From assembly GCA_037447605.1 (NCBI GenBank), contig CM074811.1, positions 2,914,001-2,978,000 on the forward strand: a stretch of 64,000 nt of DNA. Reading direction: 5' to 3'. Position numbers and translations under genes: made by a program. Every line of letters starts with the position of its first letter. Position 1 is the first letter of the stretch. The notes below the pieces were generated by a model. It worked only from the letters and a program-made list of their open reading frames with translations. It made no database searches and was not told where the DNA came from. This document shows, one piece after another, positions 19,655 to 64,000 of this stretch. Origin of the DNA: Zygnema circumcarinatum SAG 698-1b. Lineage: Eukaryota; Plantae; Zygnematophyceae.

Positions 19655-21074
19655 CTCTCCCTCTCCCTCTCTCTCGCTCTCTCTCTCCCCCCAACCCCAA
19701 CCCTCTCCCTCTCCCTCGCTCCCCTCCTCTCCCGCTCCCTCGCTCCCCTCCTCTCCCTCTCCGTTGCTCCCCTCCTCTCCCTCTCCCTCGCTCCCCTCCT
19801 CTCCCTCTCCTTCGCTCCCCTCTCCCTCTCCCTCGCTCACCTCCTCCTCTCCCCCCTCTCCCTCTCCCTCTCCCTCTGTCCTCCCTCTCTTCCGCTCCCC
19901 CTGAGCCCGCCCCTGCCTGCCAGCTGGCGCTCGAAATGGACCGGTGGGGGCACAACGCAACAACAACGGGGTGGAGGGCAGGCTGCGGACCGCGTCACAT
20001 GTGGCCGTTTGGTTCACACCGTTCAACCTCGCCCGAACTGCTTTTGGAACTGTAGCTGAGCCTGCGCGGCGTGAAATTCTGCTCATGGAAAGGGAAGAAG
20101 AGACAAAACAACGACTCGGTCTTGCAGGCATGACGTCAGCGTCCTTGTCGGCTCTGTAATTTTGACCGGTTTCCAGCTATCGTACAGTACGACATTTGGA
20201 ACACCGGGCGGGGATGTTTGTCGTTTTTGAATGACCTGGCGGCGCTGCCTACAACCGCACCGGGACTCTGTTTTGTAGTGTGACTAAATATGACTAGACT
20301 GACCAAACCGCGTGACCAAAAGAAACCGAGTCAAGCCAGGTCACTGGTTAGCCAGCCTGTTCCATTGTTAGCGAAACCATTCTCAGTGTAAGTCATTGGC
20401 CTTTAAAAGTCTTGTAATTGCTTTCAATTCCACACCTAACATACATGGGGTACCATGCTATGTGCATCCACAGATCGCATGTATGCATGCATCCCTCATG
20501 CATGCATGCATGCATGTGTTCAATCTGCACAAGCCTGCACATTCGGTTCAATAAACGGCGCCATTCAAACGCGGCGGCCTGCACACATCATGTAAATCAT
20601 CGCATCATCTCCAATCAATATCGCGCAAATTGCGCGTGCCTGAACGCTGCCAGCAGCTCTCGGCTGAAAATTATCCTCTTTCAAAACGAAGAAATTTGCG
20701 TGTCTGCCTCGGCCGCAATGTACAAGGCCGTACAGGAAAAGCTGCTCTCAGGCTTTTAGTGTTTAGGGCTCAGTGTGTGGGGCCTTACAGAAGTTCAGAT
20801 TCTTTAGCAGAACGCTACCATCCTTCCAAGAAAATCAAAGAGTACATGAACTGCAATGACCTATTTTTTATCATCACGATGTGTAACTAAAGCACTACCC
20901 CACTCCCCCTCTCTTCTTTTCACTTCGTCCCTCTCTCTCTCTCTCTCCGACCCCTCTCTCTCTCAGCTCTTTTTCCTTTGGACATTTACAAGTCCCTTCT
21001 CGAACCTCGAACGTCCTGAGACAATATCCAGATTTCCAACATTTTCCGCATCCTCAAACTCTCCCTCCCTCCCC

Positions 21075-24000
21075 TCAATCCTCCATGGCCTCTCCCTCCT
21101 CTTCCTCCTCTCCTTCCCTCCCCTCCTTCACATTCACACTAAACTCATACTCCTGATCGCACCCAAGGTAGGAGTCACACATGAAGTAGAGCATCAGCTT
21201 CTTCTCTCCCACTGCCTCCTCCTTCCCTATCTTGAAATCCAGCTTCATTCGCGCCCTCCTCTGCAGCGCCACCCTCTTAATAGCCAATAGGACGTTCGTT
21301 TTTGGGTCTCCCACAACCAACCACCATCCCTCCTCCTTCTGCTTGGGGAAGAAGGGAGCATCCACCGGACCCACCTCCTGCCCCTGCTCTACCTCCCTCT
21401 CGAGAGTGACCTGCAAAGTCACATGCTCTCCCGCCGCCACCTCTTGCCCCTCCTGCACCTCGTACAGCAGATCTATGCTGGGAAATCTGTTGCACACTCT
21501 CACCAGATCCCTCAGTTGTCCTTCACTGAACTGCAGCAACTTGGAACGCTCCTCGTCGTCCATGTCCACAAACTCCGCAACGGACTCCACTCCCATCTCC
21601 ACAAACTTCTTGGCAAGGTCCTTTGTCATGTGCGGGAGCTGGAGGAGGTAGGAGTCGCGCTCCCACTGGGCCTGCACATGGAACAGCCACTCTTCAATCA
21701 AGATTTTGCAGAGGGAGTGGGGCAGGGGAGAGGGAGGTGGGGGAGGGGGAGGAGAGAGAAAACGAGTGAGCGAGAGAGAGAGAGAGGGGGGGGGAGAGGA
21801 GAGAGAGAGAGAGAGGGTACCTGCGTGACGCACTGTGACAACTCCATGGCTGCTAGAGCGGGTCTGAGCCACCCCGAGCTGGAGACCACATCCACCATGG
21901 CCTGGAGGAGACGCGGAGCTTCCAACAGCACCACTCTCTGATCCTGTGAGAGAGGCCCCCCCAGAGGGTGGCGGGAGAGGTGGGCCTGCAGGAGAGCATT
22001 GGCCTTAGTGTGGGGTTCATTGAATTTGGGTTTTTCCAGAGCGAACCGTTGGTGGTTCATCATTTTTCTGATAGCCTCCTCCTCGCCCGGCCTCACGGGC
22101 ATCTTTGAAAACTCCGACGCAGAAGTGAGGATCTCAATCAGGCCCTTCAGTTTTGTCTTTTGGGTCAGCGAGGAGGCAAAAAGTTCGATGGTGGTGTAGC
22201 TGATGTAGTAGTAGGCTGCAATCATTCCCAAGTTCAGCGCTTCCAAATCCATGTCTGCTTGAATCAGGAGACACTTGCTTGCTTCCAGATCAGCAATTGT
22301 GCTCTCTACAAGGTCCGACAGATGCTCACTCAAATGTCGATGGGAGACTCCTTGCAGATTGTAATAGTTAGGGTTCTGGGTTAAACGACGGTAGAAGAAT
22401 GTCCAGGTGAGGTAGTCTACCGCATCTTGCTTGCTCTCTATGGTCCTCACTACCACCTCCGCATTCATGTGATCATGGAGGTAGTGATCAAGGTGGGATT
22501 CCACGGGCAGCGGCTCGAACAAAAACTTTTTGTAGTACTCTTTCCGGGGGGCGTGACAGAGGATCACGCATTTTCCAAAGGTATCTACAAGGGGTCTGCT
22601 TGCTCTCCCCATCATTTGAAGCAAATCTGTGATAGGATAATCCGCATGTGCGCTTTCTCGAGCATCAAAATATTGGGTCCCCATAACCACGACTAAGTGC
22701 GCCGGCTGAATCCCCCAGCACATAGGACTGCTCGCTACGCATACCTGAATAGCCCCCGCATAGAACAGCTGTTCCACAACCTCCTTTTCTGCAGAACTGA
22801 GCCCCTCATGGAGATAGCCGACTCCGTAGCTGAGAGCCTGCTTCAGTGCTTTGTCCTTTACTCTCTCCAAGAAGGGTTTAAGGTCTTCTTCTGTACAATG
22901 CAAAAATGGAGATCTATCGACAGCTCCTGCAGGCCCACCTGCATCATTTGCTGCATAAACTGAAAGATCGAGTGCCGTTAAACGGGCGTGTTTCCGTGTT
23001 GGAACGAACACAATGGCTGGTTTACGTTCCCGTGACGCATGCTGAATTATGGCGGTATATGCGGGCTTTGTCATGGCCTGCATTCTGGCATCAAAATTTG
23101 CAATATCCACCCCCTGAATGTGAATTTCCAGCGGTACAGGTCGCACCGCGGGAGAGAAGTTGAAGAGACCGTGGGAGCTCGCTCCGATCCATTCGCCCAA
23201 ATCCTTTGCATTTGCGAGAGAGGTGCTGAGAGCGATAATGCGAATCTTGCTTTCCAATTGAGAGCTCATGTAGCGCATGCGGCTGGTCACAACTTCCACA
23301 ACAGGACCTTCATTCCCGCCAATCAGATGCAGCTCATCCACAATGAAAAGGTCCGTCTGCATCAAAATTAGGGGTACAAGTGGAACGAGAAAATGAATAT
23401 GCTGCCGAATTCATTCTAGTAGAAAACCTCGGTCCTCTCAAATCCCTAGAAACACCCAAAAGTTCCCTGAGAAAATCCCAAACCCTGTCCTCCCCAGAAG
23501 CGGACGAGACCCTGCAATTCCCAATAGAGCATCTTCCTCCCCCTCCCCCTCCCCCTCTCCCTCTCCCTCTCCCTCTCCCTCTCCCTCAGGACAAAAGACC
23601 GAGTCCAGCTACTCTTTGAAGCCTGTCCAATTAAGCACAGCCCTGAGAAAGGATGAAGAGGCCTAGTCCAGATTAAGGTCAAGTTCAAAAATACTTAGGA
23701 ATTCGAATTTTTTAGGGTTCTCACCTGCTGCACAGCCTTCCGCTGCTTCCACCTTCTGGAGAGAGCGTCCCACTGCTCGGGAGTACATATTACAATGTTG
23801 GCCTTATCCAAAGCCTTCAAATCGCTTCCGCTTTCTCCAGTAAGCTCCACCACCCTTGCCCCCAAGCCCTGCCCAAACTTCACCTGCCAATCGCGAAGTC
23901 TCTCCTTTGCGAGTGCTTCAACAGGAGCAACATAGACGCACCTTCCCCCCATGCCTCCGTGTTTCTGAAACATCCGTAGAACGGCAAATTCCGCACATAT

Positions 24001-27000
24001 AGTCTTTCCGCTACCTGTCGGAGCGGCTACCAGAACGTTGTCGTCAGTTGTGTAGAGGACGGTAAAGACCTGCGTCTGAATGGGGTTGAAGTGGCTGAAC
24101 TGGCGAGAATACAAAGCCTCATATTCAGGGTTTCGGAGGGCAGATACGGGGAGGGGCTGGAGATCAAGGAGCTCGGTTGGAGGAGGGTACTTTTCAGGAA
24201 GAATTAGGTGACGGAAAGAGACCGGTAGTACAGCCTCGGAGCCTAACCACTTGTCAGAGATGACTTTTACGAAATACTGGGGAGGGAGAGGCTCGTAGAT
24301 AGGCACTGAAAAGGAGAGGAGATGGTCCTCCTCCGCATATTGCATCTTCAGGAGGAAGTATTCATGATGCAGAATTGCTTCTCCATCATTGTCCTCCACT
24401 ATGACCCAAAAGGGCTCCACAAAGCCGTGCACTTTCTCATCCCACTGAAAGTCAGGAGTGATCGTTAAGTCCACCTTCAGAACGGAACGGGTAATCGGCT
24501 GCACATGTGCTGAAAGCTCCACGCGTGGAAACTGCAGGAGGGAGCGGGAGGAGGAGGAGGTGGGGGTCAGAATGTGACGTAGAGAGCGAGAGAGGTTTGT
24601 ATTTATTCAATGAAATTAACGCGGAGACTGGACATGGAAGTTCAAATTTGTGTAAGTGAAGGGATGTAGCTTTAGGCCTTGAAGAACAAAGGAGATGACA
24701 GCCGTTGGCGAATACTGAGTACAGAACGGGAAAGGAGGAAAGGTAGGAAGAGGAAAAGTAGGACCGTAGGAGAAACGAAAACAGGGAGAATTGTTCGAAC
24801 ATAAACAGCGGGAGAGATACAGTGGGTGGTAGGGAGAGAGAGAGAGAGAGAGCGAGAGAGCGACCATGCACGAGAGAGAGAGGGAGAGCGGTCTGACCTG
24901 GTGCACAAACTTGTGAAGTGTCTTCCCAATCTTCGGAAAGCGCACAAGCTCTCCCAGCTCTTGACTGGAGAGATCATAGCAGCGTTCCCATGCGAGGTCC
25001 TTTCTTTCCAAGCGGCTCAAAATGTCCCCCGGAACGCCTTTGAACTGGCGAAGGGGAGACTGGGAGGCCCACATGCGACGTGACACCGTTTTGCAAAGGG
25101 CGAGGGCCTTCTCTGCCAGCTGCGCCCACCCGCGCTTCAACACGATTTCGAAAAGGGCTCGCATCAGCCGCCCAGCGCTCTGCAAACAAGAGAAGAAGGG
25201 GAGGGAAAGAGTGGAGAGAAACAAAGAAAAGGGTCAGAAAGGTTTCACAGAGAAAACATTTGAACAACGATCTTGACAATGTTTGACGATAAGTGGAAGG
25301 CGATCGCAGATTCTATAACCTGACGGGCGTCTAGCAGCACCCTGTATGTTGTACATGCTTGTCTGTATTGCTGTATGTTACATGGTACACGTGATGTTAC
25401 AAGATACACAATATGGGTTATATTTTATATGCTATAGGTGATATGTTATATGTTATCTTATGTTGAATGTTACATACTACATGTTATGTTCTATAAAACA
25501 TGTTATATGTCGTACATTTGTCTCACCTGCGTGACGAACACCATATCGGAAGTAAGCGACAAGCCCTCCAGCTTGAGCTGACTTATGTATGCTTGCAGAA
25601 GCACATTGATTTTGGCACTCGGTTCTTCGATGCTCTCCTTCACCGGAATGGGCACGCGGTCCAAAAGTTTTGCCAACTCCATTTTCTCCTCCTCCCGAAC
25701 AGTCACATACTTGAACTCTTCGCTGAGCGAGAAAAGACGACAGAGCTCGATATCTCCCATTGTTGGCTTGAGGTGCTCATTATATGTGGCGATAGTTCCG
25801 TGACTAACATAGTAGAACGAGGCAATCCGTCCAAGATCCGTTACTTGGAAGTAGCCACTCTTGCGATCGTATTTGATTAGTGAATTCTTATCCAGCGATA
25901 GTGCGGCAGAATGGATCTGCAGAAGGAGCCCAAAAAAAAGGGTGTGGGTTCAAAAATGTAGACTTACAAGAAAGAACCAAAGGGGGAACAATCTGCAAGT
26001 TCAGGCATTTTTCCGCACCTTCAAACTGTGAGCTGCTTAAACTTCCCCACCCAAACCCAAGGAAACTCACCAAATCTGCTCGCCTCTCCTCCAAAAGCGG
26101 ATCTCTCTCCAACTCCTCCTCCGACACCCCATACAGCGGGTGATTCCGCAGCATCCTAATATACAAATAGGTGTATCCGAGCCACCTCGTTGCCTCTCTC
26201 GCGTTTTGTACCGTGCCCAGCACAATTTCCGCATTCAAATTGTCTGCGAGTTTCGAGATGAATTGCGATTCAATCGGCAATTGTTGATTCAAAAGGGAGA
26301 GGTAGAACTGCAGTTCTGCATGACCTGTAATAATGATTCCTTCTCCATAGGTGTCAAATTGGGGTCTCCCCGCTCGCCCCAACATCTGCATAACATCTAA
26401 GGGAGAGAGTTCCGTCCAGGCTCCCTTTTCAGGATTGTAGATTTGGGTCCCTTTGATTATAACAGTATGGGCCGGAAGGTTGACTCCCCACGCGAGGGTA
26501 GCGGTAGAGACTAACACCTGAGAGAGCACGGTAAGGGGAAAAGTGTAAGGGAAAAAAGCATAAAGCAGAGAGATATAGGACTGAAATTTGCTAGAGAACT
26601 GCAGAAAGTCCAATACACTTTAAGCTTTTCAACGTTTTGAGATAAAGTTCCACGATTTGAAGGAATATTGAGGTTTTGAGTCTTGAAGAAGTCCTTTGGA
26701 TGAGCTAAAGGACTCCATTTTCATACATGTCCCAGACTTCTAGGATATAGAGCTTTTGCTTCCAAGGGAAGAAGGAAATAGCTTGTCCCAAACATATATT
26801 CAAAAGAATTTACAAACCCTAAAATCCTTCCTTCCTTTCACCATTTTCTGCCCCTAAAACAGAGAGATTCATTCCTGGAATCCCTCAAACGACAAATCCT
26901 AACCACACTTCGCCTTCCCCCTCACCCCCTTACATCAAACTCTTGCTCCTTTCCTCCCACTTGATTATGGCTATACTGAAAATCGAGAACGGGGAAAGAG

Positions 27001-29638
27001 AGAGAGAGAGAGGGGAGGGGGAGAGAGAGAGGACCCTATCTTTCTTCCCCTTTACCTGAATGTGGCCGTCTGCAAAGAGGTCCTCCACGAGTGTCCTGTC
27101 TGTCCTCGCCATTCCCGCATGATGAATTGCAAATCCGTACGGCAACAAATCTTTCAGGTCATTGCTCTTGACATTTTCCGCTTCTGTCTGCAGAATTTCG
27201 CGGCTTGCGGAATCCTCCTTCAAAAACCGTCCTAACGTGTCATTTGTGAGCGCAGAATCTCGGATCGATCGTGCCGTTTTCGCCGTTTCTTTTCGAGAAT
27301 GGCAGAAAATCAGTACTTGATGTTTCCCCGCTGATTCAATCACTTTCTCGTAGCAAATATCGTTCATCAGTTGAAACCGCTGCAGAGGTTTCCTCACTGT
27401 GATTCCAATGTACTGCTGAGCGAGGGGACAGGGCCGGAAGGAATTGTCAAAATAGAAGAGCCCCTGCTTCAAATTCACTCGCAGAAAGTGAGCTACATCT
27501 TCATAATTTGGAAGAGTTGCACTCAACCCTACAAGCCGGACCTGCTCCTGCGTACTTTCAATCTGCCGAACCGTTCGAGAAACGATACTTTCAAGGACTG
27601 GCCCTCGGTTATCATGCAGCAGGTGAATCTCATCGATAATCAACAGCTTCACAAGCTGCGTGTACGTTCGATCTCCCGATTTCCGAGTAATAATATCCCA
27701 CTTTTCAGGGGTAGTTACGATTATCTGCGTCTCCTGAATCTGCTGCCTTGTCAGGGTCGCATCTCCTGTAAGCTCCTTCACAGAAACTCCATAATCTTTC
27801 AATCTGTTTGACAAATTTCCCACCAATTCCGCTACAAGCGCCTTCATGGGAGCCACATATACGATCTTAAAAGCCGACAGATCGATGGTTCCATCGGATT
27901 TTCGGTGCAGCCCGAGCTCATGCAAAATGGTAAGCATAGCAACATTTGTCTTTCCGGCCCCAGTGGGAGCGCAAAGAAGCAGATTGTCCGCCTTAAAGAA
28001 TGCGGTTTCATACACCTTCGATTGTACCCGATTTAAAGAAGTCATTTTTGCAAACGCGGGGCGTACCCACTCGGGCATGTCTGAAATTTTCACGAGAACC
28101 TCGCCCTCCTCCAAAGGCTTCGGTTTAAGCGCCGGAACATGGACTTCATCGTACCCTTTCTTCGCTGCCCGATATGAACCTTGCGGAAGCTCACATCTCT
28201 TATTCGCCATTAAAAATCCACCTTGATGGAAGGAAAGAGACTCCAAATCAAGGGCTTTCCTTTGCTGCCCCTTCAGCCACCCGCCGCCTCCTCCCCCTGC
28301 CCCTCCCTCCACTCTCTCTTCCTCCGCCATGGCTACATCCTTCCCCTCTCCCTCTCCCTCTCCCGCTGCCCTCTCTCCTCCGTCTTTCAACCGCCTAGCC
28401 TCTTCTCTGATCTTCCTCTCTAAATTCGTCTGCCTCTCCTTTGCCGAAGCCCTTGTTGCATGTAATTGCTCCAAAATCGCCTTCAACTTTTCGTCGTCTT
28501 TTTCCATCATTTCTGCTTCTAATTTTTTCCGCTGGTCTTCATCGTCCGCCCGAGCGAGCCGCGTGCACCACACGACTTTCATTCTGTTCCTCAGCAGCAT
28601 CTTGATTAAGTCAAATTTATCATAATCCAGCAGCATAACCAGCCGGTCCTCGATTATTCGATCTTCCTCCCCCGACGCCAAAATGTCAAGCACTTCTTCA
28701 GCAAGTTTCTGGCTCTGCTGCGGATCAATTTCTGAATACGCTTGACCTATTTTCCTCTGTAACCAATAAGCATCAATATCCTGCACATTCAGACCCTCAT
28801 CCGCCTCTTCCATGTCATCGTCATCTAACCCTCCCTGCATCTGCATAGCTCTTTCTCCATCATCCTCCTCTCCTTCATCCTCTTCCTCCTCCTCCACCTC
28901 ATCCAGATCATCCTCCTCCTCCTCCTCCTCATCCTCAAACTCCACTGCCACGCCAATATCGTCATCCAGCGCCTCTCCAGCTCCTCCGCCTCCCGCACCC
29001 CCCTCCCCTCCCCCCTCCTGATAATCCGTAATCTTCTTCCCTACCGCCACGTACTCCGCAAACTTCTCATTCGTCAGATTATTCAAAAGCTTCTCGATGT
29101 CACGTTTCTTATCCAAATCCTTCAATTTATCGGTCTTCAACACCGCCAACACTTCATCGGCAGCGCCTCTCAATATATCCTGCGGCTGATCACCAAACTG
29201 CTGCTGTATCATACTCAGCAGAGCCTCATATGCAGCTCGCGTCTCCTTAGTTTTCGGTCTGTAACTTCCATCATCCACCAACCCTAACACCCCGCCATCG
29301 CTCTGAACCCCACCATATCCAACTCTCTGCCTCTTCTGTCTCCCTCCCTCTCCCAGCCCTCCTCGCGCCCCTTCCCCCCCCCCACCCTTCTCACCCTCCC
29401 TCTCCTTCGCCGCCTTCTTCTTCCTCACCCTCTCCTCGAGTTCCGCCGGGCGGCCCTGCGTGGCCCTGTCCCCAAAGCTCCGCGGGTCGATCTTCCCCCA
29501 CAGCGTCTCCGGCTCCCCCGTGGGCTCGTGCGTGTCGCGGGGCCGCGTGTCGGTGGTGAGGACGAGAGAAGAGTTCGCGCGGTACTCGTACTGCTTGAAC
29601 CGAGCGTGCGCTTCTGCGCCTCCTCCGAGCTGCGCCAT
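21075..29638 (-). CDS. BRR2: U5 snRNP 200-kDa DExH helicase BRR2, ~2213 aa; exons 29638-27056, 26517-26071, 25916-25527, 25179-24898, 24531-23725, 23356-21821, 21671-21075
   Basis: N-terminus [20 protein letters not shown]. Two helicase cassettes (CAPTGAGKT...IIDEIH; AAPTGSGKT...IVDELH) and a Sec63 C-terminus ([11 protein letters not shown]...[14 protein letters not shown]). All introns are GT-AG, phase 0. Confidence 0.98.
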
Positions 29639-29642
29639 GGCG

Positions 29643-36405: not shown

Positions 36406-39006
36406 GGCAGCCTGCCTCGCTCTCAACTCTTAAGCTGCAAAGCTCCTTAGAACTGCGAACTGCAAACCCTAAATCTCAGCCTGCAAACCATAATCGCCTG
36501 AAAGAGTGCTGCATTGGAGGAACACATATTTCTGTCGCCCGCTGACTTCGAGGTTGCATTTTAGGGCACTGTTTTTGCGCTTTTTAGGTCAACGCATTCT
36601 TGTATGGATTACAGTACGCTCCCGGACGGGCCACTCGCCTCTCCCACTCACAGGCCCTCCCTCCCTCCCCCCTTCCGTACCTCCCTCTCTGTGCTCTCTC
36701 TTCCCCCCCCTTTCTCTTCCTAGCTTTGCCCCTTACCCTCTCTTCCAAAAGGCGCCAACCTTTCTCCGTATCCATCTCCCTGCTTCCTCCCCTTCCTCTT
36801 CTCCTGTTTTCTGCTCATTGCTCCCCTCGCCATGGCCATGGCCAAACAGAGGAGCACGGATAGCGTCGCAGAGAAGTCTCCGCATGGCGCACTAGAATAT
36901 GTGATCCCTCCCTTCTCACGTGTACAGATATGCTGCTGCCTACTTTGGAGTGCTTATAGGTGCTAATGACCTAATCTAAGGTCTATTCATGATCCCATAT
37001 CAAATGAAGTGAAGGTGAAGCATCATCACATGTCAAGTGACTGTCAAGAGATGTTGACGTAATGAGTATGCGCTGCTGAAGCTCCGGGAAGTGTGCTGCC
37101 TGGATCTTTCTTAGGGTTGCAGGAATACCTGGTTCGTGCCTTCTGAACAACTCACTGTTTAGCAGAGCTCTTGCAAAAACAACAATGGTGAGGCTTCGAG
37201 TTGAGTCCAATGCCTAAGAAAAGGTGCATCAGTTTTGAACTACGTTCCTTTTTAGTTCGGCCATAAGCCGCATAAAGGACATGTGTTCCCGGATGTTGCC
37301 CCGCACTCCAGTTCTTGTTGAGAGGGAAGTAATGCAAGTTCACAGGGGTATCAAATGCTTTCAAAATCTTCCGAACATGTTCAAACATTCTTTCAACTAC
37401 TTTGCCTTCTTGTGTCTTTTGAAAGAGATTAGAATAGAACAGAATAGTCTGTGTAGGTGTTTTCATTCAAGGGGCGTGGTCATATGGGTGGCAGGAAAAT
37501 TGCTCAGTTGAGATTCTCAGCTTATGTTATCGTTATCGATTCTGACACTTTATTTTTAGATAACGGTGTTCCAGACTTGGCTTCCCGGTATGGAATCCGA
37601 ATTTGCTTTCAGATTTCATAACGGGAAGCCAAATTTGGAACGCCGTATTCTAAACTTTTCAAGTGCCGTGAAATTAGCACGTTTCAAGAGGCCTACGACG
37701 ACTTTTTTTGATTCCGTCTCAAGACCGAGACAATGCAATCGAGCACCACCCAATTTGCAGGCGCTATTGAAGGGCCGATGTCAGCTAAATTTACAAGTGT
37801 TTAAAGTTTAGATTTCGAGCTTAGGGCTAGAGTTTCGGGTTAGGGTTATCTGTTTGAAAAATAAAGGTTCAAAGTTCAGGATTTTGAGTTACAGTTTAGA
37901 TCTACGGGTGAAGAATAGGGTTTCAGGATAGAGGTTTATGTTTAGGATTAGGTCTTCAGTTTAGGTCTGGTCTTGGCTTAGAATCAAGGACATTCGAAAT
38001 TTAGGGGTTTTCTCGATTGCAAGCTATAGTCGAGCATCTCCAAAAGGCTTCCCTTCTTTCTCCACGTATACATAACAAGGTTAAGGCTTCAAGTTAAGGG
38101 TTAAGATAAGAGAACTCCGGTGGAGGGAAGGAATTCCAATTGATATCGGAGTGAAGGTGTAAGCATTTGGGGAAATGTGAACTTTTATAGTCAAGTTATC
38201 TGCGACTCCCTCGCCGAATATGCGTTTTTCCCCATTAAAAAATACAGCGGCTGCAGCAGTTCAGTGACGAAACAAATCTCTACGTAATAAGTGTTCGCTA
38301 AAAAAGTGAGAGAGAGTGCGACGGAGAGAGAGAGAGGACGTGAAGGGAGAGCAAAGAGAGCGGGAGATATTTAAACAAGATAGTTCTTTTTAGCTGAAGC
38401 CAAAGATGAGGCAATCAAAAGTAAGGTGAATGTAGACTCGCAGAGCTGAGAGACGTGGTCAAAAGAATAGTCATTCAAGGAAAAAGGTCTCATATTTATA
38501 AAAATAAATAAGCATCTTGATTCTTTTCTCGTCAAAGGAGCTTTTTCTTTTCGAGAGAGAGAATTCTGTTCATCAACTTTTTTTATGAAAGATAAAAAAA
38601 ACTATTCTTTCCAACTAGTGGAGAAACCTAGTCAAGAAACTAAGAAACCTAGTCAAGAAACTGAGCAGCAAATTCCCAGCCAGCCAACTGACCGAACTAT
38701 TTGATTGCCGCCACCGAATATTAGCGGCGCTCTACCCTTAGGCCATGCTTGAACCGCTGCTTTACAGAAAAATTTGAGCCCGTTTGTGAAGGCATTCTCT
38801 CTCTCTTCTCTCTCTCTCTCCGAGCGGATTCGGGCAGGCCGATATTTTTTTCTCTAAAAAAAAGAAATTCAGAAGGGGGTGGATATCCAAAATGGAGGGA
38901 GGGTATCATTTACCTTTCCGTTTAAATTCTGTGTCTATTTTAAAATCTGCCCGACGAAAAAAGAAGTGTATCGATCCAAAAAGGAGTGGATTTGTAAGTT
39001 TCCAAA

Positions 39007-39030
39007 CTCGCCATCGTGAGTTCAATGCCA
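39007..39030 (+). mobile_element. Isolated 3'-end motif of the CRE-like retroelement family
   Basis: CTCGCCATCGTGAGTTCAATG is the same motif as at 40157-40177 and, reverse-complemented and slightly divergent, near 53330-53350. Confidence 0.5.
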
Positions 39031-39654
39031 TTTTCCTCGTCCAACTCTAAATACACGGGGAAAGTAATTACTCCAGTCGTTTGCCGCCACGTGGCTGTAA
39101 CAAGATTCGTCTAGGTGCCACGCTGGCGATGCGGGTGCCACGCTGGCGCGCAGCCACCGACCCGCCGTCATCGCCGGTCGTGGTCGCAACTAGCAGCAGA
39201 TTGCTGGCGACAGCGTCGGGCCACGTGGCGAGCGCTGATTGGTGTCCACACACTATCCGACGTGGCGCGTTCCACGGACGTTCATGGAGCCTCGGCCTCG
39301 GACGGATGAACGGAACGTGACAACTGTCACGTCCAGCCTTGAGTATGGTACAAGACACCCCTAAACCGCGAGGACCTCAGGGCGGGCCCATGGTGTTGTT
39401 GTTGCTGAACATGAACCATATGTTATTGAGCATGGGCCTATGTTGTTGTTCAACATGAAACCTACATTGTTGTTGAACATGAACATACTGCTCCAGTGTA
39501 AATCTCTTTAGATTGGCGCGCTATTGGAATGGAAACCAAAATACGTAGAGGCGAGCATAACATGGGTGTAACAAAAGGGTGTATACTGTACTCGTAAAAC
39601 CAACCAACAGAGATCAACAGAGATAAGCGAGAAAAAAGTGTTGGTGGGTGCGAC

Positions 39655-40354
39655 TATAGCTCCGTTTTATACACTTTGAGGTTCGATACAGTGTATAATA
39701 CAGTATTAATACTGTATTATACACTGTATAATACCTTAACGCAACTGTTAACAGCCGTACAATCGGAACATAGATACGTACGGAAATTATGTACGGAAGG
39801 GGTGTACCAACATGTACGGACCAAGTCACACGTGTTGAGTGTTTGGCAAGTGACGTGACTTGGCAAGTGCTGGAGACAGCGTATTTCCGTCGCCCTTCAG
39901 CGTTGCCTCGCTTCTACGCTTCTTCGGCGTGCTGCGATTGTTGGTGATCGTGTTGGTGGACTTCCGCCGCTCCCTCCTCGCGACGTGCCTCACATCGGTG
40001 ACCTTCGCGGCTGCTTCTAGGGCTGCGTTGTTGTGCCTAGGCGTAGTTTTCCGCTCCTAGCTTCGTTTTATTGTGTTTCGGTCCTTTGTGACCAGTCCTT
40101 CGTGGTTCCACATTTTGCCTTTGTCCATGTACAAAGGCCATCGTGACGGCAAAGGCCTCGCCATCGTGAGTTCAATGAAAGTTTTATACTTCTTCGCTGG
40201 AATTTCAATATTATAATCAATCTTTGTTCAACTAAGCACGAAAATAAAAAAAATACGTTAAATACATTAAAAATATACTGTATTTTAAAAAGTTGTATAA
40301 TACATCGTATTATACAGTGTATTAATCCACGCGGTTCATACATACGGAGCTATA
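39655..40354. mobile_element. 700-bp non-autonomous TIR DNA transposon (hAT-like by its 8-bp TSD) inserted at the 3' end of a 5S rRNA gene
   Basis: Perfect 11-bp TIRs TATAGCTCCGT (39655-39665) and ACGGAGCTATA (40344-40354). Both are flanked by the direct repeat GGTGCGAC (39647-39654 and 40355-40362). Subterminal AT-rich hairpins are related to each other. Confidence 0.85.
39874..40177 (+). mobile_element. 5'-truncated 3' end of an RLE-type (CRE-like) non-LTR retrotransposon, nested in the TIR element
   Basis: Translates RQRISVALQRCLASTLLRRAAIVGDRVGGLPPLPPRDVPHIGDLRGCF* (stop 40018-40020), homologous to the end of ORF 53472-53990. It is followed by the same 3' UTR ending GCCATCGTGAGTTCAATG. 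Confidence 0.8.
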
Positions 40355-40470
40355 GGTGCGACACCGGGACTTCCCGGGAGGTCACCCATCCCAGCACTAT
40401 TCCGGCCCACAGGCGCTTAGCTGCGGAGTTCTGATGGGATTCGGCGTAGCAGCCCAGGTATGATCGCACC
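40355..40470 (-). rRNA. 5S rRNA gene, solitary copy, 116 nt
   Basis: Minus strand GGTGCGATCATACCTGGGCTGCTACGCCGAATCCCATCAGAACTCCGCAGCTAAGCGCCTGTGGGCCGGAATAGTGCTGGGATGGGTGACCTCCCGGGAAGTCCCGGTGTCGCACC. Helix I pairs (GGTGCGAT/GTCGCACC), and the A-box/C-box regions are like plant 5S. Confidence 0.92.
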
Positions 40471-40530
40471 ACGATCACGTAATTTAATTTATATGTACTG
40501 TTTTAATTATCTATTACTTCATAAAGACTA

Positions 40531-41494
40531 CACAGATCGGACCATTAGACAAACCAGTTGACTGGTTGGCAACCAGTGGTTGCGGACCGAAACAACCATT
40601 CGACTGGTTGCCAACCAGTGGATGCCACTGGTTGGCAACCATTCGACTGGTTTGGAACCAGTGGATGCCACTGGTTGGCAACCAGTCGAATGGTTGCCAA
40701 CCAGTGCCGCCGGATCGAAACAACCATTCGACTGGTTTGGAACCAGTGGATGCCACTGGTTGGCAACCAGTCGACTGGTTTGGAACCAGTGGATGCCACT
40801 GGTTGGCAACCAGTCGACTGGTTGCCAACCAGTGGCATCCACTGGTTGGAAACCAGTCGACTGGTTGAAACAACCACCTGGTGGCATCCACTGGTTGGAA
40901 ACCAGTCGACTGGTTGCGAACCAGTGGCGCAGGACTGAAACAACCATTCGACTGGTTCGGAACCTGTGATCCAATGGTTGGCAACCATTGAATTTCTGAA
41001 ATTATGCCTTTTTGCAAAAATGGGTCGTTTGTGTTTTTTGGTTGGTTGCCAACCGTTGACAACTCGTGTAACAAGCCTGATGCGTACAGATGCGTACGGA
41101 TTTGTACAGACGAATCGTACGGTTGTACGGGGATTCTGTACGGCCGAGCCGTAATAGTTTTCTCCGAAACGCCGACGGCATTTTGGTAACTGTAGCGTTC
41201 AGTTCGCTACAACTAGTGATTTAATGGTTGCCAAACATCATCCCCCCTGTTGCCAACCATTTGATTTAATGGATATAACCATTCGACTGGTTGCCAACCA
41301 GTGCCGCCAGATCGAAACAACCATTCGACTGGTTGCCAACCAGTGGCATCCACTGGTTCCAAACCAGTCGACTGGTTGCCAACCAGTGGCATCCACTGGT
41401 TCCAAACCAGTCGACTGATTGCCAACCAGTAGACGTCCAACCATTGCCATCCAATGGTTGTCCAATGGTTGCCGATCCACTGGTCCGAACTGTT
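40531..41494. mobile_element. ~960-bp foldback/MITE-like element built of two arrays of palindromic modules around a spacer
   Basis: Arrays (~40550-40990 and ~41225-41485) of AACCAGTCGACTGGTT and AACCAGTGG(ATG/CAT)CCACTGGTT. Imperfect terminal inverted repeats ACAGATCGGACCA (40532-40544) / TGGTCCGAACTGT (41481-41493). No clear TSD. Confidence 0.6.
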
Positions 41495-41540
41495 TTAGAC
41501 TTTGTTTCAATCCCATCCTCTATTTAGAGGTGCCCTCATC

Positions 41541-41829
41541 CTCGCTTCTGTGCTCCTTCGGCGTGAAGCCGCGGTTGGTTGTTGGTGGCCGTGTCGGTGG
41601 CCTTCCCTCCCTCCCTCCATCCCTCTCTCCGCGAGATGTGCCGCACATCGGCGACCTTGACAACAGCTCCGAGGGTGGGCTGCGATGTGGAGCCTAGGCG
41701 TAGCTTTTCTCTCCTAGCTTTTTTCCATTGTGCTTATGACCAGTTCGTCATGGTTCCCCATGTTGATTTAGTCCATGTACATTTAATGGCATCGCCATCG
41801 TGAGATCAATGCCACATCCTTTGCGTTCA
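41541..41829 (+). mobile_element. Second degenerate 3' fragment of the CRE-like RLE retroelement; a further end motif at ~41911-41932
   Basis: CTCGCTTCTGTGCTCCTTCGGCGTG...CACATCGGCGACCTT...CCTAGGCGTAG...CCATGTAC...GCCATCGTGAGATCAATG is collinear with 39874-40177. Confidence 0.7.
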
Positions 41830-53181: not shown

Positions 53182-54386
53182 CAGTGCACTCACGTTATAG
53201 TGACATTGTTTATAAAAACAGCATGGATATATTGACGTTTTTTCCGGGAACGGAATTGCACCACTGCAGATCCTGCGCCAGTAGTGACGCCATTACGGAT
53301 ATAACGACGTTTGAAATGAACGGGATGATATATTGAACTCACGATGGCAAGGCCATCAAACGTACATGAAGAAAATCAACATCGGGAACCAAAGGGAGCG
53401 GTCACAATGAACTAAAGGTCAAAGAAAAAGTTTCTGAACGAATGTCTACTCCTAGGCTCAACAACACGGCACTAGAAGCAGCCGCAAAGGTCGCCAAGAT
53501 GTGGCGCAACACGCGTAGGAAGGGGTGGGCGACCACCGGGACGAGCACCAACAATCGCCGCACGCCGGAGGATGGTGGAAGCAAGGCAACGCTGCAAAGC
53601 GATAGAAATGCGCTGTCGATAAAAAGTCGCGAGGATTGCTGGGGGAGGGCTTCCGGGGCCGAGCATCTCAAAGGAGCGATGGGCGCACTGGCGAAGGAAG
53701 ACATCCAACCGAGCATCGAGGCAGCCAAAAATCTCGATCGCCAACGGAACAAACTCATCGGCTGAGTCGCGGTGAGCATACGCACGCTCCTTACGGAGGG
53801 CCGCGTCTCGAGTAGCGACGCCCTTGTGGTGTGCAGAACGGGATAATATGGCATGGCGAGTCGGATCAGCCAATACAACGTCCCCAAAAATATGCCGCGC
53901 GCCGTCTAAAAGAGCAAGGTCGGGACGCACGCCGCGCTCGCCAGTCGTAGTCTGCCGAGGTGGGATAACATGGGACGGCTCACATTGCACAAGGTAACCC
54001 GCCTCCTAAGCCACGGCGGCAATAGCGTCACGGACCGTTTGAAAAACCCTAATTGTTACTTTATATTCAAAATCTCGATATTATCCACCCACGTATCGGA
54101 AAATATGTTACAAATAACCGTATACATTATTGACAAATACCGTCAGATATCGAGTCGACCGTACACATCAACTTGACCGTACACATGCTCACTAGGTTCG
54201 TACACACCTACCCCAGTGACGACTCCCCAAAAAGTACAATGTACGGTATCAAAGGTGTACGGATATGCCGCAAAAACATCTGTAACAACATTGTCACTAT
54301 ATATGTTAAATGACAAACGGGTCATTACGGATATAGTGACACAAATATGTGCGGACCGACACGGTCACTATAACGTGAGTACCCCG
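53182..54386. mobile_element. Non-autonomous Tc1/mariner (pogo-like) element with TA target duplication
   Basis: Left TA|CAGTGCACTCACGTTATAGTGAC and right GTCACTATAACGTGAGTACCCCG|TA. The 17-bp core ACTCACGTTATAGTGAC is perfectly inverted (53188-53204 / 54364-54380). Internal ATTACGGATATA repeats. Confidence 0.8.
53317..54035 (-). mobile_element. 5'-truncated RLE-type (CRE-like) non-LTR retrotransposon with a 9-bp TSD, nested in the pogo-like element
   Basis: ORF remnant 53472-53990: VRPDLAL...IFGDVVLADP...AALRKERAY...FVPLAIEIFGCL...FYRQRISIALQR (restriction-like endonuclease RPD..D...K pattern). Flanked by the direct repeat CGTTTGAAA at 53308-53316 and 54036-54044. Confidence 0.85.
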
Positions 54387-58900: not shown

Positions 58901-60071
58901 GGTTGCCGATAGAATCTGGAATAGACCCCGAGAGGGAATTTTTACCCAAGTATCTGTAGAAAATAAAACGAAGAGTCATTGAACAGACACGCTGCAAAGA
59001 CTAGCATTCCTCTATCTGGAATTTCTACAACTTTCATTCCAAATTAGTGGGGAAAAGGACTTACAATCCTTGCAGGTTCACAAGGTTGCTGATAGAATCC
59101 GGGATAGACCCCGCGAGGGAATTGTAACCCAAGTTTCTGCCAAAAAGTAGAAAAGAAAGGTATCACAAATTTGGCCCATGTTTGCAGCAAAAGCGAAAGT
59201 GACGTGGAAAGAATGCTCAAGTGAATGCGGGGGAGTCGAGCATCGACAACACGTCCGTGCGCGCGACGTGACACGTGACCAGGACGCAAGCACGCACGCA
59301 TTGGCAGCTCCACTTCTCCGAAAGTTGCAGTGCTCCTACAAATGAAGCACATCCCAACATCTGAGCCCTCCCTACCACAGTGTACACACAACCATGCATC
59401 GGAAGCATCCTGATGGAACTTTATGAAATGGAGCCACTTACAAGGATGTCAGCTTTGTCAGGTTGCCGATGGCAGGTGAAATGCTTCCTCCAATTTCGAA
59501 GTTCTGTAAATAACTGCATAAGGCAGGTTAGCAGTGAGAGCGTCAGAAGAAGAAAGGGCCGCGGGCAGTAGCAGGACTGCTCCGGGCGGCCCTTTTCATT
59601 CCATTTCTGTGGGGTCTTCTTCCCGTAGACCCTCCTCGTAGCCTCGGGCTGCAGTTCAGGAATCACAAACGGTATTCAGTCAAAGTGTAGCTCACATGTC
59701 AAAAACGCGCCCGCTTGCGTCGCATGTGATCCCACTCCATTTGCTGCAAAGGCGGTTACTCGACTTCCAGGAGGATAGGAGATCTTGTCCGTTGGTGAAT
59801 GCCGCTTTGACAGCGAGAAGAGCGTCCCCTGCGCCCAAGCGCAAGCAGATGCAGGATTGGATTGAGGCCGCGGTGCGCTTCAAAAAGCACAAACAGAGGC
59901 CCCGCCGCGGGCAGGCCGCCTCTCCCCTTCTTCCATAGAGGGCGGGCGGGCGGGCCGCGGCGGCTCACTGTCTCGCGGGTCGATGGCCTGAGCGGCGGCT
60001 TCGCGCGGGGCGGCGGCGGCGGCAAAGAGGAGGAGCGCCGCCGCGAGAGAGAGAGACCGCGCGCGCGCCAT
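55946..60071 (-). CDS. LRR gene A: secreted LRR + EGF-like + Arg/Pro-rich-tail protein, ~493 aa. Exons 60071-59969, 59828-59696, eleven 72-nt LRR exons (59513-59442, 59136-59065, 58953-58882, 58764-58693, 58528-58457, 58321-58250, 58125-58054, 57870-57799, 57658-57587, 57453-57382, 57087-57016), 56671-56334, 56061-55946
   Basis: Signal peptide, plant LRR N-cap (ALLAVKAAF...LSSW...CSKWSGITCD), 24-aa plant LRRs (xLxxNSLTGSIPDSIGNLxNLxxL), Cys-rich cap and EGF-like CGGRGTCGYDTATCTCDKGYALVSGTC. The total of 1482 nt is in frame. The last exon choice (SRSPPPRPRPP...SRSP*) is my best guess. Confidence 0.85.
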
Positions 60072-61189
60072 CGCGGCCAAGCGCCCGCCGGAGACACCAG
60101 GGGACGGGACGCGGGGGCGGCCAGAGGCGAGGAGAGGGCGGGGAGGGGCGGGAGGGAGGGGCCTGCGGGGAGGGAGGGCGCCTTCCTCCGCCAAGGCTTG
60201 GGACAGGGACGGACGGCGGCGCGGTTGCGCGGGGTTACTATATACTATGGGACTGCCATACCTCGTACGAATGGCGGTCTCGATGCACCGACACTTATAT
60301 ACGGTCAGGATGCTTCCACCGACATTATTAATAAGGCACGGACATCACAAGAGGAGGCCGCGAGCCAATGCGCGCTGTGGACCAATCAGCATCGGTCAAT
60401 TTCTTTCGCGCCAGCTCGCATACAGTGCGGCGGCTTCCGCCATGGCTTGCGGGGACCGCGGGGCGCATCATGACAAAGCTGCCCACCCAGGATTCCAGCT
60501 GGTGGTCTCACTGCATACGGACGGACAACTGGAGTCATGCCACGTCACATGTCAACCGAGCGCACTGATTGGCTGCGGTGAGATTTGCGGTGTGCATCCA
60601 GAGCGCCCATGATGAATGGGCGGTGAAGGAGACAAAACATTTCCTGAGCTGACTACCGATGTATTTTATTTTTTTGAAAGTTTTTGTTTTTGTGAAGTCA
60701 AATCTTTAATTTCTTTTGGGTACTGAGAAATTCTCACTTTTTTTGGCTAGATACAGAACTTTTTTCGCCGGGCAGATTTTATTTTACAAAAAGGGCAAGT
60801 GATTTCCCGCCCCAATGGATTTATCACTACCCATCTTTTTGAGGATGCCGAAGGAGGCAAACATCTCGCGGCGGACCGCAAATCGAACGGCCGCGAATGA
60901 GACGAATGAGACATGTATCTTTTTCTTCTTGCGAACGAATATGCGGACGGATGGGCCATGCGAATATTATTTCCTCGCTGGCACCTTGCGATTATTTTAC
61001 CGATATGGTCCGTTGAAGAAATTCCGGGCAGCGAATGAGGGAGCGCCGCGTGGCCCCCCGGAAGCCATGGCGGAGGAAGGCGCCCTCCCTCCCCGCAGGC
61101 CCCTCCCTCCCTCCCCTCCGCGCCCTCTCCTCGCCTCTGGCCGCCCCCGCGTCCCGTCCCCTCCTGTCTCCGGCGGGCGCTTGGCCGCG

Positions 61190-64000
61190 ATGGCGCGCGC
61201 GCGGTCTCTCTCTCTCGCGGCGGCGCTCCTCCTCTTTGCCGCCGCCGCCGCCCCGCGCGAAGCCGCCGCTCAGGCCATCGACCCGCGAGACAGTGAGCCG
61301 CCGCGGCCCGCCCGCCCGCCCTCTATGGAAGAAGGGGAGAGGCGGCCTGCCCGCGGCGGGGCCTCTGTTTGTGCTTTTTGAAGCGGACCGCGGCCTCAAT
61401 CCAATCCTGCATCTGCTCGCGCTTGGGCGCAGGGAACACTCTTCTCGCTGTCAAAGCGGCATTCAAATACGTACGAGATGTCACCTCCTGGAAGTGGAGT
61501 AACACCGACTGCAGCAAATGGAGAGGGATCACATGCGACGCAAGCGGTCGCGTTACTTCGCTGTGAGCCACACTTTGACTGACCAATGCTTGTGATTTTG
61601 GAGGGCTCCGCGAATTCCATAGCTGCTGAAATGCAGCCCGAGGCTGCGAGGAGGGTTTTGCGGGAAGAAGCCTCCTCAGAAAGGGAATAAAAAGGGCCGC
61701 CCGGAGCAGTCCTTCTACTGCTCGCGACCCTTCCTCTGACGCTCTCACTGCTAACCTGCCTTATGCAGAAGCTTATGGTTCTCCGACGTTGCAGGAACCA
61801 TTTCACCTACCATCGGCAATCTGACAAAGCTGACATACTTGTAAGTGGCTCCATTCTATAAAGTTCCATAAGGATGCGTTCCATGCATGTTTGCGATTAC
61901 AATGTGCTAGGGAGGGCTCAGATCTTAGGGGTACTAAATTTGTAGAAGCACTGAAGCACAGCAAATTTCCAGGAAGCGGAGATGCCAATTCGTGCGTGCT
62001 CGCGTCCTCGTTAAGTGTCACGTCACGCACACGGACGTGTTGTCGCTGCTCGACTCCGCCGCATTCACTTGAGCATTCTTTCCACGTCACTTTTGCTTGT
62101 GCTGCAAACATGGGCCAGATTTGTGAAGCCTTTCTTTTTCTGATTTTGGCAGAAGCTTGTATGGTAATACCCTAACAGGGTCTATCCCGAATTCTATCGG
62201 AAACCTTGCGAATCTACAAACATTGTAAGTATTTTTCCCCTTAAATCTGAAATGAAAGTGATAGAAATGCCAGACAGAGGAATGACAGTGATAGAAATGC
62301 TATTCGTGGCAGCATGTTTATTCAGTGCCTTATTTTTTTTATTTTTGGCAGATCCTTGGCTTCTAATTCCCTAACTGGATCTATCCCGGATTCTATCGGC
62401 AACCTTGTGAATCTGCAAGGCTTGTAAGTATCTTTCCTCATAAATATGAAATGAAAGTGATAGAAATGTTAGACAATGAAATGCCAGTGATAGAATTGCT
62501 AGTAGTGGAAGCATGTTTATTCAGTGCCTATTTTTTAATTTGGCAGATCCTTGGCTTCTAATTCCCTAACGGGGTCAATCCCGGATTCTATCGGCAACCT
62601 TGCGAATCTGCAAGACTTGTAAGTTTTTTTTGTCAATAAATCTGAAATGAAAGTGATAGAAGTGCTAGTCGTGGCAGCATGTTTATTTAGTACGGGGTCT
62701 TTTTTTTTTTTTTTTGGCAGAGAATTGGTTTTTAATTCCCTAACGGGTCCTATCCCGGATTCTATTGGCAAGCTTGCGAATCTGCAAGGATTGTAAGTAT
62801 ATTTCCTCGTAAATCTGAAATCAAAGTGGTAGAAATGTCAGACAGAGGAATGCCAGTGATAGAAATGCTAGTCGTGGCAGCATGTTTATTGAGTGCCTAC
62901 TTTTTTATTTTTTGGCAGATACTTGTATGGTAATTCCCTAACAGGGTCTATCCCGGATTCTATCGGCATCCTTGTAAATCTGCAAGCATTGTAAGTATTT
63001 TTCCCAATAAATATGAAATGAAAGTGATAGAAATGTTAGACAATGAAATGCCAGTGATAGAATTGCTAGTAGTGGAAGCATGTTTATTCAGTGCCTATTT
63101 TTTAATTTGGCAGAGATCCTTGGCTTCCAATTCCCTAACGGGGTCAATCCCGCATTCTATCGGCAACCTTGTGAATCTGCAGTACTTGTAAGTATTTTTC
63201 CTCATAAATCTGAAATGAAAGTGATAGAAATGCCAGACAAAGGAATGCCAGTGATAGAAATGCTAGTCGTGGCAGCATGTTTATTGAGTGCCTACTTTTT
63301 TATTTTTTGGCAGATACTTGTATGGTAATTCCCTAACAGGGTCTATCCCGGATTCTATCGGCATCCTTGTAAATCTGCAAGCATTGTAAGTATTTTTCCC
63401 AATAAATATGAAATGAAAGTGATAGAAATGTTAGACAATGAAATGCCAGTGATAGAATTGCTAGTAGTGGAAGCATGTTTATTCAGTGCCTATTTTTTAA
63501 TTTGGCAGATCCTTGGCTTCCAATTCCCTAACGGGGTCAATCCCGCATTCTATCGGCAACCTTGTGAATCTGCAGTACTTGTAAGTATTTTTCCTCATAA
63601 ATCTGAAATGAAAGTGATAGAAATGCCAGACAAAGGAATGCCAGTGATAGAAATGCTAGTCGTGGCAGCATGTTTATTGAGTGCCTACTTTTTTATTTTT
63701 TGGCAGATACTTGTATGGTAATTCCCTAACAGGGTCTATCCCGGATTCTATCGGCATCCTTGTAAATCTGCAAGCATTGTAAGTATTTTTCCCAATAAAT
63801 ATGAAATGAAAGTGATAGAAATGTTAGACAATGAAATGCCAGTGATAGAATTGCTAGTAGTGGAAGCATGTTTATTCAGTGCCTATTTTTTAATTTGGCA
63901 GATCCTTGGCTTCCAATTCCCTAACGGGGTCAATCCCGCATTCTATCGGCAACCTTGTGAATCTGCAGTACTTGTAAGTATTTTTCCTCATAAATCTGAA
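61190..64000 (+). CDS. LRR gene B (3' end outside window). Exons 61190-61292, 61433-61562, then 72-nt LRR exons at 61769, 62153, 62352, 62547, 62721, 62919, 63116, 63314, 63509, 63707, 63902
   Basis: Exon 1 has the same sequence as gene A exon 1; N-cap LLAVKAAF...SW...CSKWRGITCD. Each LRR exon is GGCAG|...TT|GTAAGT, phase 2, e.g. SLYGNTLTGSIPNSIGNLANLQTL. The exon at 63116 has an extra AG at its acceptor. Confidence 0.9.
62150..64000 (+). repeat. Tandem array of ~175-200-bp intron+exon cassettes; ~393-bp dimeric higher-order repeat from ~62900
   Basis: Exon starts 62919/63314/63707 (YLYGNSL...LQAL) and 63116/63509/63902 (SLASNSL...LQYL). The intervening introns are near-identical. Confidence 0.95.

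Follow-up and report, generated by a model that had tools for sequence, protein, structure and literature searches.

Introduction

A small number of described systems bear on DNA transposons found in or beside small RNA genes. Members of the Dada superfamily leave a 6-7-bp TSD and have no TIRs, carrying subterminal repeats only (Kojima & Jurka 2013, PMC3706591), and Dada-5S of fish targets the internal 5S sequence ATTCCCAGGCGGTC (Kojima 2022, PMC8869645). For the catfish Rineloricaria, a hAT element is reported within the spacer (NTS) of the 5S genes (review PMC10946416). The first-pass annotation of the locus described here held that no DNA transposon targeting the 5S 3' end was known; as a statement on 5S-targeting DNA transposons in general, this is outdated since the description of Dada-5S in fish in 2022 (PMC8869645).

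Here we analyzed a 64-kb window (the whole stretch of DNA under study), in which a TIR element lies at the extreme 3' end of a 5S rRNA gene. Our analysis indicates that the element, as compared with these systems, is probably an ordinary MITE that reached the 5S gene in a single insertion.

Results

Element structure and insertion point

The sole RNA gene that Rfam detected in the 64 kb is a solitary 5S rRNA gene (40353-40471, minus strand; RF00001, 89.1 bits against a gathering score of 38), whose match spans the full model length (positions 1-120). In the Rfam alignment, the 5' strand of helix I lies at 40470-40463 and its 3' strand, GTCGCACC, at 40362-40355, both on the minus strand, and the two pair as GGUGCGAU/GUCGCACC. 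Sequence inspection, pattern and repeat searches and depth together delimit a composite non-autonomous TIR element of 700 bp at 39655-40354, which consists of a MITE and a nested insertion. Pattern search located the left TIR, TATAGCTCCGT (11 bp, 39655-39665, plus strand), and the right TIR, which reads ACGGAGCTATA on the plus strand (11 bp, 40344-40354, minus orientation). The TIRs match each other perfectly (11/11), and the sole two matches to TATAGCTCCGT and its exact reverse complement in the 64 kb are these ends. The element is flanked by an 8-bp TSD, GGTGCGAC, whose copies at 39647-39654 (sequence, repeat scan) and 40355-40362 (sequence, Rfam) are likewise a perfect match (8/8). The left copy belongs to no 5S according to BLAST, and the right copy comprises, to the base, the helix I 3' strand of the 5S, i.e. 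the last 8 paired bases of the gene. A perfect 11-bp TIR with a perfect 8-bp flanking repeat occurred in 0 of 30 simulated windows, therefore chance is excluded for the TIR+TSD structure. All further window matches in the TIR+TSD scan were palindromic artefacts within long foldback repeats. The scan also recorded, at 59962-61299, a long inverted repeat whose palindromic junctions are GC-rich.

Removal of the element and one repeat rebuilds an empty site that reads ...GGTGTCGCACC CACCAACAC TTTTTT CTCGC, in which the 5S end is CACC-CA-CCAACAC-T6, i.e. 5S-CACC-CACCAACAC-T6. For comparison, a spurious ORF on the sense strand of the 5S was used in a protein-level search, which matched bryophyte-type 5S loci only, including those of Physcomitrium and Sphagnum. 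The nearest match, an ENA metagenome contig of a bryophyte-type organism (L002), contains the 3' end of an LSU rRNA followed by a 5S (102.5 bits), whose last ~40 bases are identical to those of the window 5S and which ends in ...GTCGCACC-CA-TTTT. By this comparison, the rebuilt window site reads as the expected 5S architecture with a slightly longer trailer than that of L002. With the L002 5S as reference, the element entered the gene 1-2 nt before its annotated 3' end, and the tail that follows helix I, formerly CA, is now TA. In L002 itself (positions 1-628), the rRNA genes have a linked arrangement with the 5S ~310 bp downstream of the 26S/LSU rRNA 3' end, and an array of TTTTAGGG-like repeats follows the 5S at ~690-790.

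The first-pass annotation had proposed that a genuine TIR/TSD DNA transposon inserted at the 3' end of a pre-existing 5S gene, that the 8-bp direct repeat around the element is this 3' end, and that removing the element with one repeat restores a 5S gene with its terminator. Our results agree with all three: the ends and the duplication are correct to the base, and the empty site could be reconstructed with its T6. Its claim that the mature 5S was left intact stands for helix I and, strictly, fails for the last overhang base (CA to TA).

Both ends of the element carry subterminal repeats. A palindrome at 39676-39739, identified by repeat search, has 32-nt arms that are 88% complementary and holds 5 of the 8 window matches to TGTATWATAC at three sites (39692-39734), and a motif search placed the right subterminal copies at 40294-40316. 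All 8 matches (0.03 expected) lie within ~40-80 bp of the element's two ends, and we presume that they are transposase-binding repeats. The ORFs of the element reach at most 91 aa and are without database relatives, and the MITE is non-coding. A search for relatives of a 71-aa ORF across the left TIR returned none, and the 91-aa element ORF and a 42-aa ORF of the 5S are absent as genes from protein and contig collections. The TIR contains TAGCTC, the A-box core; a tRNA-like origin of the element ends was considered and rejected after ARAGORN and Rfam found nothing, and the shared string is treated as a coincidence. Within the element, Rfam produced merely below-threshold hairpin matches to miRNA models, which are caused by the palindrome.

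The usual hAT TIR start is (C/T)A(A/G)NG (YARNG). The TIR of this element begins with TATAG, which has T instead of A/G at position 3 and does not match the hAT start, and its length fits. An 8-bp TSD as in hAT elements is present, GGTGCGAC being duplicated. Because an 8-bp TSD, short TIRs and subterminal repeat clusters constitute the hAT architecture, the MITE is probably hAT-like on the basis of architecture alone. No transposase linked to the MITE was found among the element ORFs or in the window.

Nested retrotransposon fragment and copy number

The 700 bp had been described as a single unit. Instead, a MITE of ~379 bp carries a nested fragment of a retrotransposon. The nested insertion is 321 bp long (39875-40195, plus strand), with retrotransposon homology up to ~40177 followed by an 18-bp tail, and it is flanked by copies of the 6-bp duplication GCTGGA at 39869-39874 and 40196-40201. 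Short-form contigs from three runs connect 39868 straight to 40196, with six ambiguous letters at the joint. BLAST, alignment and comparison within the window showed that the nested piece is homologous to 41540-41811, 53332-53617(-) and 39007-39027. All four window copies share the 3' end ...GCCATCGTGAGTTCAATG and then diverge, and they have no common target sequence. The 53-kb copy runs upstream into a 172-aa ORF, whose relatives include proteins of 930-1100 aa and which aligns to their C-terminus, downstream of RVT_1. Because the ORF of this longer copy matches the C-termini of RVT_1 proteins, the nested piece can be read as a 5'-truncated copy of an abundant retrotransposon, of which the 3' end remains. 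The repeat at 53332-53990 (-), 41540-41811 (+) and 39007-39027 (+) is very abundant, with run depth up to ~10^5, and the 172-aa ORF has the motifs RPD...DVVLADP...K. Pfam did not find an N-terminal endonuclease in the 930-1100-aa relatives, and the abundant repeat may be a non-LTR retrotransposon whose restriction-like endonuclease is C-terminal.

Four DNA runs, which belong to three studies, supplied contigs that were aligned to 38900-40545. Over the left flank, depth corresponds to a single copy (~25-200, varying by run), and it rises ~100-fold at the left edge of the element to reach thousands inside, where the left arm is covered by 20-35 distinct contigs (at 39691). In run X1, contigs that resemble Nextera adapters (loose ends AGATGTGTATAAGAGACAG) account for part of the depth at 39670-39779, therefore the copy number was taken from the short-form joint contigs. 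The Nextera adapter AGATGTGTATAAGAGACAG resembles the element motif TGTATAATACAG (39670-39740, X1), which calls for caution with any copy number based on depth. The short-form contigs, which skip 39869-40195, have depths of 686-2769 compared with 24-55 for exact single-copy contigs, i.e. the short-form MITE is present at about 25-55 times single-copy depth. The MITE family therefore has a canonical member of ~379 bp and, by this ratio, roughly 25-55 near-identical copies, i.e. dozens. It is short (<~800 bp) and non-coding, has TIRs and a TSD, and is present in many copies, the three features that define a MITE. BLAST found no other copies of the family in the 64-kb window.

The exact left junction is present in all four DNA runs (contigs 39375-39679/39702, 0-1 mismatch), therefore the insertion is not private to the assembly. 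For the left flank at 39058-39579, the runs contain two or more diverged paralogues, represented by contigs of 1373 and 1072 bp with ~90% identity. Since one paralogue contig also enters 5S-like sequence, the flank and the 5S unit together seem to be a low-copy dispersed duplicate. The 1373-bp contig (~90%; X2, X3, X14) was considered as an empty-site paralogue and rejected: it goes from the left flank up to 39579 to the 5S from 40368, and the number of letters in between could be as high as 395, too ambiguous for this use.

Uniqueness of the element/5S junction

An undescribed family specific for the 5S 3' end had been suggested in the first-pass annotation, and the assembly graph provides a test of this idea. 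Run X1, the sole run with all right-junction words, is the probable source sample, and one of its contigs spans 40246-40382 with 0 mismatches at a depth of 49.4, crossing the junction between element and 5S. In a de Bruijn assembly with k = 31, a contig ends where the next k-mer is common to another locus, and here the first k-mer common to other loci is 40353-40383, which consists of two element bases and 5S. The majority 5S of the genome equals the window 5S over 40355-40394, the majority variant being reported at none of these positions. If another copy occupied this 5S site with an identical 11-bp end, whichever its orientation, the contig would therefore have stopped at or before 40373, the decisive shared k-mer being 11 TIR bases plus 20 5S bases. 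By the same contig logic, no other locus in X1 has ATA adjoining the canonical 5S 3' end. Because the X1 contig runs past this point at single-copy depth, there is good but not conclusive evidence that the junction is unique in X1 though the family has dozens of copies; the test uses one contig, one run and assembler conventions, and is blind to copies with a variant third-from-last base or located in 5S variants.

A contig of another MITE copy in run X2 begins exactly at TIR base 1, which is a weak hint that the flanks differ just outside the TIR. In a metagenome scan, the right-end 18-mer matched only by chance, in an unrelated contig (L001) that looks bacterial and has no 5S, and a literature search with the TIR string returned unrelated primer and guide matches only. 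With the junction single-copy in X1 despite dozens of family copies, the suggestion of a 5S-specific family is not borne out, and the evidence does not support site specificity of the MITE family for 5S.

State of the 5S gene and its surroundings

The original Pol III terminator is the T6 of the 5S strand (A6 on the plus strand, 39632-39637), which follows helix I at a distance of 9 nt once the empty site is rebuilt. Its displacement, which had been noted before, amounts to 708 bp. The first T-run on the 5S strand is now a T5 at 40287-40291 (-), inside the element and 63 nt past the gene. This T5 may possibly act as a substitute terminator, and a 5S read-through transcript that stops there is plausible. 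A run search with the right-junction words gave no RNA run among the matches listed. Upstream of the gene, TATAAAT at 40487-40493 (-), ~17-23 nt from the 5S start, appears from its sequence to be a plant-type TATA-like element. Because this TATA-like box lies ~20 nt upstream, we conclude that the 5S at 40353-40471 began as a normal gene unit.

The run contigs place the 5S total of the genome at roughly 2000-7000 times single-copy depth, therefore almost all 5S genes lie elsewhere. Compared with the majority 5S in these contigs, the window 5S has two differences, at 40395 and 40441. At 5S position 31 (40441) it has A and the majority has G, and in the Rfam alignment the resulting A-C mismatch breaks a helix III pair. 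At position 77 (40395) it has G and the majority has A, which turns the conserved loop E AGUA into AGUG. Since two conserved positions differ from the majority 5S, the window copy is probably a decaying, drifting orphan that may have lost its function.

From ~60 bp upstream of the 5S, a ~1-kb foldback extends over 40530-41495, built of 43-bp units (AACCAGTCGACTGGTTGCCAACCAGTGG...) in opposed arrays at 40551-40927 and 41277-41484, and CAGATCGGACC / GGTCCGAACTG appear to be its ends. A clean TSD could not be identified for this foldback, the best candidate being the 9-bp repeat ACTGTTTTA at 40497-40505 / 41489-41497. Three ARAGORN 'tRNAs' within it were discarded as hairpin artefacts. Elsewhere in the window, a gene for the spliceosomal helicase BRR2/SNRNP200 (Helicase_PWI, DEAD, Sec63 and BRR2 plug domains) has large exons at 21000-29640 (-).

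Discussion

Our results are probably best explained by a non-autonomous MITE, most likely mobilized by a hAT transposase, that inserted once into a dispersed solitary 5S, in a single event and not through a habit of homing to 5S. In the proposed mechanism, a hAT-type transposase would cleave the helix I 3' strand sequence, GTCGCACC, with an 8-bp stagger, and repair would copy the 8 bases, by which the 5S would keep its full helix I and lose the adjoining T6 terminator. Later, in the order of events that we infer, a 5'-truncated retrotransposon copy would have inserted midway along the MITE and produced a 6-bp duplication, and the element would thereby have grown to 700 bp. The landing at the 5S end would be due to chance, or at most to a general liking for open, Pol III-bound DNA. 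One point against this explanation is the precise match between the TSD and the 3' strand of helix I, a striking position to reach by chance alone.

This position, in which the TSD of the sole copy equals the last 8 paired 5S bases, would also fit a MITE family that is truly site-specific for the 5S 3' end and whose transposase recognizes the helix I/terminator region and inserts there repeatedly. DNA transposons that target small RNA genes do exist, as Dada and Dada-5S demonstrate (PMC3706591, PMC8869645), and 5S genes in thousands of copies would be a safe target. However, the TIR/5S junction is single-copy in X1 in a family of dozens, and the X2 contig that starts at TIR base 1 hints weakly at differing flanks, and we regard such specificity as very improbable. 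It is also improbable, in our view, that the family or its transposase prefers the 3' boundary of Pol III genes (5S, tRNA) in this bryophyte-like plant genome and that the other copies have slightly different ends or variant targets, to which the test on one contig is blind. hAT elements generally favor open chromatin, and the family might have no sequence specificity and favor Pol III-transcribed or nucleosome-free DNA, with landings near 5S and tRNA genes enriched but at no exact site. The second repeat, a mobile-looking foldback from ~60 bp upstream that leaves the 5S hemmed in by insertions, and the hAT element in the catfish 5S spacer (review PMC10946416) are consistent with such a regional preference. 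Yet the foldback upstream may be no more than the ordinary spacer of 5S genes in this genome, and n = 1 for the MITE family, which leaves the regional preference unlikely, with a small but real chance of being correct.

The locus might also have arisen with no transposition at all, the 8-bp and 11-bp repeats being coincidental or the product of recombination or repair between 5S-related sequences, since helix I puts GGTGCGAC-like strings at both ends of any 5S gene. However, the left GGTGCGAC lies outside any 5S, the TIR+TSD structure never arose in the simulations, the interior is a multi-copy family with depth changes at the TIR, and excising the element restores a normal gene with its terminator. 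Together these observations reduce the chance of an origin by coincidence or recombination to almost nothing.

If the family were 5S-specific after all, target-specific DNA transposition would be extended to TIR elements and to plants, with a possible safe-harbor integration tool. If it preferred the 3' boundary of Pol III genes, it would be the first TIR-type, hAT-like DNA transposon that targets small RNA genes, and the first in the plant lineage. As found, what is probably a single insertion of a hAT-like MITE gives a clean example of nested transposition beside a Pol III gene, shows a way in which a dispersed 5S copy can become separated from its terminator, and illustrates the use of assembly-graph logic as a test of junction uniqueness. 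The MITE is useful for repeat annotation of the genome; mechanistically it is ordinary and would not surprise a specialist.

Among known systems, Dada and Dada-5S resemble the window element in being DNA transposons inside a multicopy small RNA gene, including 5S, and some Dada elements target the A-box core TAGCTC, the same string that occurs within the window TIR. In contrast to Dada, the window element has an extreme 3' site and a probably unique junction; the specificity of Dada shows in most of its copies, whereas the junction described here is single-copy by contig logic in one run. Because its 8-bp TSD and its perfect terminal 11-bp TIRs differ from the Dada definition, the window MITE is not a Dada element. 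Mutsu and other non-LTR retrotransposons that target 5S or snRNA genes likewise exploit multicopy Pol III genes, but they are retrotransposons with an RLE endonuclease, a mechanism unlike that of a TIR element. The nested retrotransposon fragment is also unlike the Mutsu type, as its four window copies are without a common target. Pokey, a piggyBac element of Daphnia 28S rDNA, is likewise a TIR DNA transposon with MITE derivatives at an rRNA gene; Pokey repeatedly uses TTAA at a specific 28S site, whereas the window element is without sign of repeated use. The hAT element in the 5S spacer of Rineloricaria is another ordinary TE beside 5S for which targeting is unproven, but it lies in the spacer, whereas the window element cuts the last bases of the gene and parts the gene from its terminator. 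In comparison with hAT elements, the window TSD fits just half of their weak nTnnnnAn preference. The element is otherwise like hAT MITEs and Ds-like elements in its 8-bp TSD, its 11-bp TIRs, the subterminal repeats at both ends, the non-coding interior and the presence of dozens of copies.
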